Shown here in pieces: positions 970 to 17,820 of a stretch of 64,000 nucleotides of DNA (its first letter is position 1; the number at the start of each line of letters is the position of its first letter). Made by a program: the position numbers and the translations under genes. Source of the stretch: Zootoca vivipara (lineage: Eukaryota); contig NC_083276.1 in assembly GCF_963506605.1 (NCBI RefSeq), positions 67,580,001 through 67,644,000 of the forward strand, in the 5' to 3' direction. The notes below the pieces were generated by a model. The model had not been told where the DNA came from and did not search any database. It saw nothing but the letters and a program-made list of their open reading frames with translations.

Positions 970-1126
970 TCATTCTTCGGTATTACCATCAACTGGAAAC
1001 CAGAAATATTCAATGATTTTCCTGCCTCTTCTAGCTGGTGTTTTCTCATGCAGTTCAGCAGGACAAAGTCCACACATCTGAGGATGTCCAAGGTTTGAAC
1101 TGGGTGCGACAACTCTGTGCAAAATC
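970..1126 (-). CDS. Coiled-coil gene terminal exon I (ILHRVVAPSSNLGHPQMCGLCPAELHEKTPARRGRKIIEYFWFPVDGNTEE*)
   Basis: tctctgcag acceptor; the phase required by exon G gives 51 codons to TGA at 970-972. Confidence 0.72.
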
Positions 1127-1264
1127 CTGCAGAGACATAAAGACTCACCATAATAGTTAATGCAAAAACTCAGTATGTCTGCACCATAGTTTCTCTACTG
1201 CATGTTATTGCCCCATTTCATTGGTATGTATTTATTTATGCCTCCTTTTGGTGCATGTAAACTT

Positions 1265-1505
1265 TAGGGTTGCCATACGTCTGGAATTTCCTGGACATAT
1301 ATGGAATACTGCAGTTGGAAGCAGTGTCCGGGCAGAAATTGCCGAAATGTCCGGGGAAATCCAGATGTATGGCAATCTGTGACAGCAGTGTCGTTATTTT
1401 TGCTCCAAAAATCCTTTTCTTTTTCTTTTCTTTGTTTGTGTGAAATTGCCACAAAAGCTCAACAACTTTTCTGTCTGGATTTCTGTCTGAAATATGGCAA
1501 CCCTA
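1265..1505. mobile_element. MITE with tagggttgccata TIRs
   Basis: tagggttgccatac ... atatggcaacccta; related copy at 4117-4274. Confidence 0.78.
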
Positions 1506-1510
1506 ATGTA

Positions 1511-1836
1511 CAGCGGCGGGCCGGAGGGCAGGGGAGTGCGCGCCCATGCGCATGCGCACACGGTCGGGAAAAAATCGCCGAAAATCGCTTGTGCGCATGC
1601 GTATGGGCCTCCCCCGACCCGGAAGTGCATTGGAAATGACCTCTTCTGGGTCGGGAGAGGCCCATATGCATGCGCACAAAGGATTTTCGGCGATTTTTTG
1701 CTGATTTTGAAGATCGCCGCCGCGCCGCGCGCCGTAAGAGTGGGCGGGGGCAGCGGGCGGCGGGGGTCGTCGCGGGCCGGATTGGGAGGCTAATTGGGCC
1801 GCATCCGGCCCGGGGGCCATAGTCTGGGGAACCCTG
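1511..1836. mobile_element. CpG-rich hAT(Charlie)-like non-autonomous element fragment with internal palindrome
   Basis: Ends gggccgcatccggccc..ccatagtctggggaaccctg, as in Charlie/MER30-type termini; inverted repeat 1569-1699. Confidence 0.6.
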
Positions 1837-1838
1837 GT

Positions 1839-2156
1839 CTAGGGCTTGCTGATCAGAAGGTCGGCGGTTCGAATCCCTGTGACAGGGTGAGCTCCCGTTG
1901 CTTGGTCCCAGCTCCTGCCAACCTAGCAGTTCGAAAGCATGTCGAAATGCAAGTAGATAAATAGGAACCACTACAGCAGGAAGGTAAACGGCGTTTCCAT
2001 GTGCTGCTCTGGTTTGCCAGAAGCGGCTTTGTCATGCTGGCCACATGACCTGGAAGCTATACGCCGGCTCCCTCGGCCAATAATGCGAGATGAGCGCGCA
2101 ACCCCAGAGTCGGTCACGACTGGACCTAATGGTCAGGGGTCCCTTTACCTTTACCT
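1839..2156 (+). mobile_element. Sauria SINE (5' A-box region missing)
   Basis: B-box GGTTCGAATCC at 1866-1876, typical body, (TTTACC)n tail. Confidence 0.9.
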
Positions 2157-2968
2157 AATGTACAGTATATACAAGTAATGATTAGTATGGAAGAAATGAG
2201 GGGCAAGAGAAAAAAGGACAAGTAGAGTGTTTGGAATACGAGGCTGGATCAGTCTGTACAAACAGATTTGCTCCCTGTACAAGTGAGCAATCACTTGTTG
2301 GCTCCCTAGTTTACTCACTGAAAGCAGCAAACAAAAGGAAATGCTTCTCACGATCATCAGAACAAACATTATGGGGAAGTGTTCTCTCTTTAACAAGATG
2401 CTGACTTCCCCCCTTGACCAGAAGTCAAACTCAGGAGTGCAGCCCTAATCTAGGGGTTCCCAACATAGTGCCCACGGGCACTAGTGTACCTGCCAGTACC
2501 TCCTATATGGCACCTACAAAAGGAAGGTCTCACTAAATATCCCCTAAAAATTCACAATGCATGAGAGAGCTCTTCCTGTTCTCTTCTTTGCAGTGCCTCA
2601 GTCTCTCCTACACTAAACACCCACAGTTCATCATATGCCAGGAGGAGAGAGAGAAGAGTGGAGATGCAAAGAGCTGTTCTCTATGAACGAGTGCAGCAAT
2701 GCTTTATGTAGGTCCCCCCCCGCCGCCGCCGCCAATTGATAGGATGTGGATGTGCTTGTCCACACCATTCTGTGGCCCTGTCTCTTTTTCTGCTCTTTTG
2801 GCTATGGCAGCCATCCTGTATTATGCCACATCCTACAGCAGCCATTTTGTGTTAAGCAGCACAACCCCCACAGTAGCCATTTTGTGACCTGGCTATGGCA
2901 TAATCTCAAAACTCCAAATAGCCCCCAAAGTTTGGCAACCCTGTTCTGATTAATCTAAGCAGTAGGAC

Positions 2969-16084: not shown

Positions 16085-16225
16085 CTCTTTAACTAGTGTT
16101 TGCAGTCCATGGTTTATATTTCTGAGATTTCTCATGCCCAGCTCGCTTTCCGATTTCATAAAAATTCTTTCCAAATGCAGCTCATTTGACAAGCATTTGT
16201 TCTGTTTCTTCAGGTCCTCGCATTC
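16085..16225 (-). CDS. Coiled-coil gene exon B (ECEDLKKQNKCLSNELHLER...LQTLVKE)
   Basis: cag/gtatga boundaries; 141 nt, phase 0-0. Confidence 0.88.
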
Positions 16226-16691
16226 CTGATGACATACAGATAGTTTTTGTCTTAATATCATTCTGGATGATTTCAGCTCATAAGATTTATTGCAGCCATT
16301 TCTCTAAATTGAACAATTTTGAAAATGTTCCTATGGGAATATATTCGCTTAAGGTGTGTCTGCCATGGCTGTGTGGGTAGGTGGGGGAGTTCAACACTAT
16401 TCTCCAAGCACACAAATAATCTTTCAAGCGAAATAAAAGTATGCTGAGCAATAATCTATATTTAAAACATGTAGTGTTACAGCAGAAAGATGTTATAGGA
16501 ATTGTACTGGCCATGTGCATCTTAGACTGAGCAAGGAACCAACAGTTGGCAAACAAAAAGGACATGCCATATGCTTCTTAGAGAGGCTGCAATCTCAATC
16601 TCATTAAGGTAAACTACATGGACCAGATGACCTTCTGCCAATCAGATTCTGAATTAGTTTTGTGCACTCATGCACAGTGAGGCTGCAGATA

Positions 16692-16778
16692 AAAAGGTAA
16701 AGGACCCCTGGACGGTTATGTCCAGTCAAAGGCAAATATGGGAGTGCGGCACTCATCCCACTTTCAGGCCGAGGGAGC
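16692..16778 (-). mobile_element. Diverged Sauria SINE 3' fragment
   Basis: aaaggtaaaaggacccctgg...ggccgagggagc resembles the SINE tail. Confidence 0.7.
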
Positions 16779-17327
16779 ATTATTATTGAAAAACACAAGG
16801 ACTTAACACAGGCATTTAGCCTATGCTTTCCTGTTCATAGAAATATTTTTTTTCTGTTATGTGGGCATAAGAACAAAAAATATTCTGAATACATCTTATT
16901 AAAAGCCCAGTTCACAGGTGGAAGTCCTTGCTGGTTAGCTAAACCCCACCTATTAAAACAATCTAGATACAGATAAGCAATAAGAATCTCATAGATTATG
17001 GAGGACTCTGAACAATCTAATAATGAAGAAGCAGAAACAGCTGACTTTGCTAGGAGTGTTATTCATTTCCAATACAACATAACAAAAGAAAACCAATTCT
17101 TGCTTGAGTAATAGAAAATTCCTGTCTCTAATAACTTTAAAGCAAAAGAGAATTATGATAACATTCTCTATTGCGGAGCTAGGATGCAATTCTCCAAGAT
17201 CTATCCTTCCAGCCCAGAAACGGCATCCTTGCATTTTTATAAAATAACGATTACTTATAAAAATAGCAAGATTATTTCCACCACTTAGAACCACGATAAT
17301 AAAAGTCAAGTTTAAAACTGTTTCAGT

Positions 17328-17420
17328 GTATCTGAAGAAGTGTGCATGCACACTAAACTCATACCAATGACAAACTTAGTTGGTCTCTAAGGTGCTACTG
17401 GAAGGATTTTTTTTATTTTA
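17328..17420 (+). mobile_element. Penelope-like element terminal fragment with degenerate hammerhead motif
   Basis: Same sequence as 31320-31412, but GAAAGCTC is mutated to TAAACTC. Confidence 0.72.
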
Positions 17421-17487
17421 TATCTCAAAATTGCACACTGCCCTGTGTTTTGAGGCCCGTCACTTTAGCACACAAATAGCCACTGAC

Positions 17488-17820
17488 CTTCCTTTTTCTC
17501 ACAAGTTCTCCTTGCAGACGGTTGATGTGAGCAACAGAGCCTCCTTGGATCACAGCACTGGTTGGGCGAATCCGACAAACAGGCCTCGCCCCACGACACA
17601 GATTGGCATGATGATCCCCAAAAGAAATGGTAGAAAGGGGAGATTTTCCAGTAAGCCCGTCAAGACTTGGCTTGCCATTAGTAAAGGATGTTGTGGCACC
17701 AGCACCGCTGCCATCGATAGCGGAAATACCTTTGCCGCCTGCCGCGTTTTCCAGCAGAGATGGTTTCGTCAACAGATTGGCCCTGTGCGGTTCTCTCTGG
17801 GATAATGTCTTTTGTGGCAT
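17488..17820 (-). CDS. Coiled-coil gene exon A (MPQKTLSQREP...GGSVAHINRLQGELVRKRK)
   Basis: ORF 17425..17820; donor AAG|gtcagt; in-frame TAG upstream at about 17884-17886; start codon tentative. Confidence 0.75.

Follow-up and report, generated by a model that had tools for sequence, protein, structure and literature searches.

The window analysed here is a 64,000-nucleotide (nt) stretch of the genome of the lizard Zootoca vivipara (contig NC_083276.1, forward-strand positions 67,580,001 to 67,644,000), and all positions below are counted from its first letter. Its minus strand carries the exons of CTR9 from ~22.9 kb upward and, ~5 kb downstream on the same strand, a second multi-exon gene, which encodes a coiled-coil protein and is the subject of this study. 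An initial annotation made from the DNA letters had placed this gene in tandem with CTR9 at 970-17820 and described it as eight exons with canonical splice sites, compatible phases and a stop-free open reading frame (ORF) of 466 codons, all of which was found as claimed when the sequence was checked. The eight minus-strand exons have AG acceptors following a polypyrimidine tract and GT donors, and exon 8 closes at the stop codon. Exons 1 to 8 measure 333, 141, 201, 188, 214, 99, 68 and 157 nt (1401 nt in total), the introns lie in phases 0,0,0,2,0,0,2, and the joined exons, counted for length and stops, amount to 466 codons followed by TGA at 970-972. The exons are as follows.

17488..17820, minus strand: exon 1, 111 codons with the ATG at 17820, 100% identical to XP_034978043.1 and 96% to Podarcis
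16085..16225, minus strand: exon 2, 47 codons, joint 13892|16085 present in an RNA contig, mean conservation 0.88
13692..13892, minus strand: exon 3, 67 codons, coiled coil, RNA joints on both sides
13059..13246, minus strand: exon 4, 188 nt ending in phase 2, coiled coil, RNA joints on both sides
11789..12002, minus strand: exon 5, 214 nt, end of the coiled coil, joint 12002|13059 in a contig of run X1 and in two reads of run X18
10764..10862, minus strand: exon 6, 33 codons, block CQ.K.KSYFLC..E....I..L.N.DGTP..F., conservation 0.85
6757..6824, minus strand: exon 7, 68 nt ending in phase 2, EGE..CFS.P and then an acidic, Lys-rich linker
970..1126, minus strand: exon 8 (coding part only), R-x-x-x-R-V-x-AP motif, variable linker, RRGRKIIEYFWFPVDGNTEE and TGA at 970-972

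The coil begins in exon 1 (LQGELVRKRK), after a disordered G/S/T-rich N-terminus and a conserved motif, RP-V-x-x-(I/V)-RP-x-SA. Exon 2 (ECEDLKKxNKxLSNE..ER..M..E.EL.MRNLR) is the most conserved exon of the protein family to which the gene belongs, exon 4 holds the conserved block QLLLAQxEKxxFExKxKL, and W334, in exon 5, is the sole fully invariant residue of the family (75/75 sequences). The conserved frame of exon 8 is the one read by the initial annotation (ILHRVVAPSS...KIIEYFWFPVDGNTEE), with the full translation ILHRVVAPSSNLGHPQMCGLCPAELHEKTPARRGRKIIEYFWFPVDGNTEE, and the protein ends in a C-terminal motif, RRGRKIIEYFWFPVDGNTEE-stop, at 1029-970. The 3' untranslated region (UTR) continues below 970.

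Each of the eight exons translates with 100% identity to the RefSeq protein XP_034978043.1 of Z. vivipara (532 amino acids, aa), which is labelled "cytadherence high molecular weight protein 2-like", a name that is an automatic coiled-coil artefact. In Podarcis muralis, LOC114597877 encodes a protein of 466 aa with the same exon structure and 91-100% identity per exon. Identity per exon is 37-72% to salamander and 10-51% to shark, and the exon translations can also be aligned to sturgeon and teleost proteins by exon-by-exon tblastn and pairwise alignment. Judged from these alignments, the agreement of the exons with their orthologues is far beyond chance. RefSeq already models the gene in Z. 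vivipara, in Podarcis (LOC114597877) and in more than 100 fishes, and so the description of the gene as hidden does not hold. Its description as unnamed is accurate, given that only inconsistent automatic names are attached to it and no characterised family was matched. About 20 such names are in use, including trichohyalin, myosin-9, golgin, INCENP-like, tropomyosin, PMFBP1, CCDC88B and prelamin, because a coiled-coil protein without a curated orthologue is named automatically. A literature query with the LOC identifiers of seven family members returned no paper naming any of them. The gene belongs to a family already present in databases, though uncharacterised and unnamed, and it is neither hidden nor a new kind of system.

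Splicing of the central exons is documented by RNA sequencing (RNA-seq). In run X1 of Z. vivipara, a contig of 1226 nt at depth 21.6 matches the minus strand in four pieces, 11900-12002, 13059-13246, 13692-13892 and 16085-16309. Its joints fall exactly at 12002|13059, 13246|13692 and 13892|16085 (exons 4-5, 3-4 and 2-3), and the skipped parts end in CT..AC, which is GT..AG on the minus strand; therefore, the contig was derived from spliced RNA. By length arithmetic, its remaining 458 nt fit what is left of exon 5 plus exons 6-8 and ~23 nt of UTR. Two raw reads of run X18 also span 12002|13059. Junction reads, which the initial annotation had named as a check on the gene, are thereby available for joints 2-3, 3-4 and 4-5, and joints 1-2, 5-6, 6-7 and 7-8 are not shown by reads; the last three lie partly outside the stretch examined for RNA joints, and all four are predicted from protein collinearity with the orthologues. 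A separate X1 contig, which is unspliced, covers exon 1 (17505-17899 and beyond). Runs X17 and X19 contain essentially nothing at the gene, and the fraction of the gene's sampled words that is present is 0.22 in X1 versus 0.00 in X20 and X21, all from one study; runs of related species also contain words of the exons. No CpG island lies upstream of exon 1, where the observed/expected CpG ratio is 0.17-0.30. The missing 5' CpG island and the presence of the transcript in X1 but almost none in X20 and X21 suggest tissue-restricted expression of the gene.

Comparison of the contig and the database models with the 466-aa model reveals several alternative forms of the transcript, two of which involve additional stretches of the window.

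16226..16309, minus strand: upstream extension of exon 2 (X1 contig piece 16085-16309; ORF 16079..16261)
14596..14742, minus strand: extra exon of the 532-aa RefSeq isoform (alignment of P0015 residues 151-199 and 200-300), not conserved

The extension of exon 2 carries an ATG at 16261 (MILRQKLSVCHQ) that would yield a short isoform without exon 1, and a 375-aa isoform of Podarcis (P0001) begins MILRQKLS(A/V)CHQ, corresponding to this ATG. The extension is either an internal start or a retained part of intron 1. Lizards (375 aa) and sharks (351 and 364 aa) have modelled short isoforms that lack exon 1, those of sharks beginning with a few residues spliced onto the exon-2 sequence, and many teleosts have a 339-aa isoform that starts at a conserved Met inside exon 2 (truncated models P0175, P0185, P0112 and P0120). 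Exon 2 itself is missing, by in-frame skipping, from models of Pleurodeles, Phrynocephalus, Caranx and Carassius (P0005, P0013, P0016 and P0017). The 66 added residues of the 532-aa RefSeq isoform correspond to the extra exon at 14596-14742 and an exon-3 extension at 13893-13967, both of which are absent from the X1 contig, with its direct skip 13892|16085, and from all orthologues; depth over 14500-14699 is 1.26. The 532-aa form is probably a minor or spurious isoform. The 466-aa model suits the orthologues and the RNA better and is the better representative of the gene.

A dispersed repeat of ~95 nt lies in intron 1 at 17318-17421, just downstream of the exon 1 donor. RNA depth over it is huge in 4/4 runs (~20,000 in X1), and loose ends and inverted joints are numerous. 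Positions 17329-17421 are a 94.7% inverted copy of 31320-31412, and no hammerhead was detected in 17200-17520 by Rfam at E up to 0.1.

The range of the family was established by an exhaustive HMMER search with exon 5 (71 aa), which returned ten proteins, followed by searches with database proteins as full-length proxies (P0014, P0015 and P0135); the 466-aa model was itself compared exon by exon. Two of the proxy searches returned 41 and 124 matches, each having scored the 8000 candidates that share most words with the query, and matches to the family profile range from E 1e-246 to 1e-102. Members are roughly 445-466 residues long and were recovered from the following groups.

Squamates: Podarcis, Zootoca, Phrynocephalus, Pogona, Phrynosoma, Sceloporus, Lerista and Sphaerodactylus
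Salamanders: Pleurodeles and Lissotriton
Non-teleost ray-finned fishes: sturgeons and gar
Teleosts: about a hundred species
Sharks: Scyliorhinus and Heterodontus

The homologues in sharks, ray-finned fishes, salamanders and squamates support the earlier proposal of an old vertebrate gene. Mammals, birds, turtles, crocodilians and frogs are not represented among the ~130 members recovered in the protein-database searches. One member of a cichlid cluster bears a second label, 'Mustela putorius furo', beside Oreochromis niloticus, and is read as a mislabelled record. A homology search with the tail alone (P0011 residues 352-463) considered 37 candidates and found self matches only, which says nothing about mammals. 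Going by the database proteins, absence from mammals is likely rather than proven, and loss of the gene in that lineage is plausible.

The 466-aa protein has three parts. Residues 1-95 are disordered and rich in Ser, Gly and Thr (G+S+T = 35%), with a conserved basic motif, RRPVRxVRPxSA; residues 96-353 form one unbroken helix of ~258 residues; and the C-terminal tail of ~110 residues contains short, strongly conserved blocks separated by linkers that vary in length and composition. Alignments of family members (A1 and A2), numbered on the 466-aa protein, show four conserved regions.

Residues 80-176: RPVxx(I/V)RPxSA, then LQGELVRKRK|ECEDLKKxNKxLSNE..ER..M..E.EL.MRNLR..N...VKELKQK
Residues 229-254: QLLLAQxEKxxFExKxKL
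Residues 351-400: RQNKACQ..K.YFLC..E.DQR..ILKN.DGTPR.F.EG
Residues 448-458: RR.RK-VV-EYFW-(I/L/F)-P, then two to five residues, mostly acidic, before the stop

The block at residues 80-176 takes in the last part of the disordered region plus the coil's first ~80 residues, and a further tail block, R...RV.AP, lies between the DGTP and EYFW blocks. The exons of the window contain RP..SA, LQGELVRKRK-ECEDLKK, W334, KACQ..YFLC, DGTP..F.EG and R..RV.AP, matching invariant columns of A1 and A2. The C-terminal (R/K)K-(V/I)(V/I)-x-YFW-(I/L/F)-P sequence and its acidic end are likewise present, and a further alignment, A3, keeps its Y, F, W and P invariant. These results establish long-term constraint on an expressed, spliced gene for a rod-type protein with conserved ends.

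An AlphaFold2 model built with A1 has disorder at residues 1-95, a helix at residues 96-353 with a predicted local distance difference test score (pLDDT) of 84-95, and short, low-confidence strands in the tail. The hydrophobic power of the helix at a period of 3.5 residues is 1.57 versus a shuffle mean of 0.21 (p about 0.0005). The power of the protein in question is reached by 1/2000 shuffles for the lizard, 0/2000 for the sturgeon and 0/2000 for the shark, and by a fraction of 0.011 for a teleost. A long uninterrupted helix with a 3.5-residue periodicity is characteristic of the two-stranded coiled-coil class. In a second model, made from a natural 238-aa isoform of Sceloporus with 76 sequences, the tail has a pLDDT of <50, with the first block helical and the rest disordered. 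The two models disagree on the tail, which may therefore be a set of linear motifs and not a domain. A search of the ESM Atlas with the whole protein gave only generic coiled-coil clusters at <=0.86, and the tail alone gave no usable match. Of the architecture put forward in the initial annotation, the G/S/T-rich N-terminus and the coil are upheld, and the compact C-terminal module is left unconfirmed by tail models that are discordant and of low confidence.

On this architecture, the helix at residues 96-353 would form a parallel homodimeric coiled-coil rod of ~38 nm (258 residues x 0.148 nm) that may serve as a scaffold or adaptor. Partners could dock at the two places of highest conservation, the first ~80 residues of the coil, in the alternatively skipped exon 2 region, and the C-terminal basic-aromatic EYFWxP motif. 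The Ser-rich N-terminal exon is proposed to be an optional regulatory module, since the shorter isoforms that are modelled for lizards, teleosts and sharks do without it. A homodimeric coiled-coil scaffold or adaptor with two docking sites has, in our estimate, about equal chances of being right or wrong. A filament, centrosomal or ciliary role, raised in the initial annotation, is speculation, the only hint of it being a sub-threshold match to Cnn_1N.

The explanation that best accounts for the whole is that of a genuine, expressed, protein-coding gene of a single, unnamed, gnathostome-wide family without a Pfam domain or a solved relative, to which we assign a probability of about 0.8. Several results limit it or its extensions. 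Three deep Z. vivipara RNA-seq runs give almost no coverage of the gene, and so expression is low or restricted; no read or contig is listed for joint 1-2, which lies inside the examined stretch; the two structure models differ on the tail, with weak beta strands in one and a helix extension plus disorder in the other; residues 300-466, when predicted as a homodimer, reached a score of 0.25, short of the 0.32 mark, with an uncertain fold, which is evidence neither way; and absence from mammals rests on protein-database searches of limited reach. The very low coverage and the unseen joint, along with the X1 contig that continues unspliced from exon 1 into upstream sequence, could also reflect a non-functional or decaying lizard locus, either a transcribed pseudogene or a read-through product of CTR9, in which the ORF merely survives. 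Such a locus is very improbable, however, given that the 466-codon ORF is intact with every splice site canonical, that identity to Podarcis is 91-100% per exon with all family-invariant residues kept, that the spliced contig reaches a depth of 21.6 and exon words occur in the runs of related species, and that no contig links the gene to CTR9. The limits of the searches, namely the word searches of 8000 candidates, the exhaustive search with a 71-aa coiled-coil exon and the tail search that found only itself, combine with the fast evolution of coiled-coil proteins to allow an orthologue of a named mammalian gene that has relocated or diverged past their reach, in which case the family would be neither mammal-less nor unnamed. 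We consider this unlikely: shark members were recovered at 45-50% identity from a single exon, so that a mammalian orthologue diverged to the usual degree would have been expected to surface; no mammalian, avian, turtle, crocodilian or frog protein is among the ~130 members; the ~20 unrelated RefSeq names are as expected without a curated orthologue; and no PDB or Pfam match was found for the family.

A further alternative concerns the C-terminal 110 residues, which might constitute an autonomous small beta-rich domain, a folded head on the coiled-coil stalk. The first model contains six short strands (366-373, 378-380, 390-392, 396-399, 418-421 and 453-460) that coincide with conserved blocks, including SYFLC and EYFWFP, but its tail pLDDT is only 31-69, the second model, which used a shorter natural isoform and a deeper alignment, has a helix in the first block and disorder in the rest, the dimer run gave an uncertain fold, and the tail linkers are variable in length and composition. 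A folded head is doubtful on this evidence. The genuine, unnamed family can also be stated in a stronger form, in which it is at least as old as the jawed vertebrates, has no characterised relative, disappeared from mammals and apparently also from birds, turtles, crocodilians and frogs, and is a coiled-coil adaptor whose EYFWxP-acidic motif and alternatively spliced exon 2 are two docking sites of a new kind; for the combined statement, the odds are about even.

CTR9 was identified by its tetratricopeptide repeat exon at 34874-35167 (E=2.5e-33 to human CTR9 chains), and its last coding exon borders the gene upstream.

22869..23453, minus strand: last coding exon of CTR9, Ser/Asp-rich ORF, upstream same-strand neighbour

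The window edge lies 970 nt past the stop codon of the coiled-coil gene, and EIF4G2, given in the initial annotation as the next protein-coding gene 3' of CTR9 in human, was not seen within it. An ORF of 250 aa at 40056-40808 (plus strand) ends in a weak match to reverse transcriptase that stays below the cut-off (RVT_1, E=0.001), and three shorter copies, at 3001-3195 (minus strand), 21687-21866 (plus strand) and 59538-59807 (minus strand), share its ...GKIEGTRRRGRQRTRWLDSVLEATNMSLTKLREAV... end. These sequences, scattered in and around CTR9, look like 3' fragments of long interspersed nuclear elements, possibly of the BovB/RTE type. A gap of 200 N in the assembly lies at 44122-44321 within the CTR9 gene body, and a long GAA/TCT-type simple repeat, probably a microsatellite, yields poly-Glu and poly-Ser ORFs at 61903-62274 (minus strand) and 61880-62068 (plus strand).

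The gene would be a well-defined addition to the old vertebrate genes that are missing from model mammals, which remain unstudied and gather misleading automatic names. A clean definition of the family, by alignment, motifs, exon structure and long and short isoforms, would permit consistent naming in databases and would make a knockout in medaka (LOC105353641) or another gene-bearing fish simple. Its value would lie mainly in being an example of an old vertebrate gene absent from mammals and in the correction of the Z. vivipara annotation.

In the comparison with known families, Pfam gave nothing at threshold per exon or on four full-length members, and precomputed Pfam annotation is blank for all family matches of two proxy searches. 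A sequence search of the PDB with exon 5, exon 8 and the family profile returned only coiled-coil noise (E >= 0.025). Centrosomin motif 1 (Cnn_1N, PF07989), with a cut-off of 28.5 bits, was rejected, since it reached no more than 15.5 bits (E=0.02) on the Podarcis orthologue and 11.3 bits on exon 3. Trichohyalin, myosin-9/11, golgins, INCENP, tropomyosin, CCDC88B and PMFBP1 were set aside because no Pfam or motor/head domain of theirs reaches threshold in the four full-length members. By eye, the tail fits none of the RVxF, SxIP, FFAT, W-acidic and CC1-box/Spindly motifs; FxFP, the ERK docking motif, fits FWFP of tetrapods but not FWIP of teleosts or FWLP of sharks, sturgeon and gar.

IRAG1/MRVI1, the other neighbour of CTR9 in human and a coiled-coil protein with a C-terminal membrane anchor, resembles the lizard gene in its CTR9 neighbourhood, disordered N-terminus and coiled coil; however, IRAG1 lies 5' of CTR9, whereas the lizard gene lies 3' of it. 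Membership of the IRAG/MRVI1-LRMP family was rejected, there being no MRVI1 Pfam match and the C-terminus of the gene product being acidic with no hydrophobic anchor. As a functional analogy, golgins, centrosomal rods and motor adaptors resemble the protein in combining a regulatory end that is disordered with a helical rod of >250 residues and with short motifs conserved at the termini, but there is no sequence or profile similarity, and the gene has no GRIP, Hook, CM1, filament or transmembrane element. This likeness to coiled-coil scaffolds is not evidence of membership. The family of Podarcis LOC114597877, in contrast, shows no essential difference from the Z. vivipara gene, with which it shares its length, exon collinearity and the LQGELVRKRKECEDLKK, KACQ..YFLC, DGTP and EYFWxP blocks, the lizard tail being only somewhat more derived, with FWFP versus the FWIP of teleosts.

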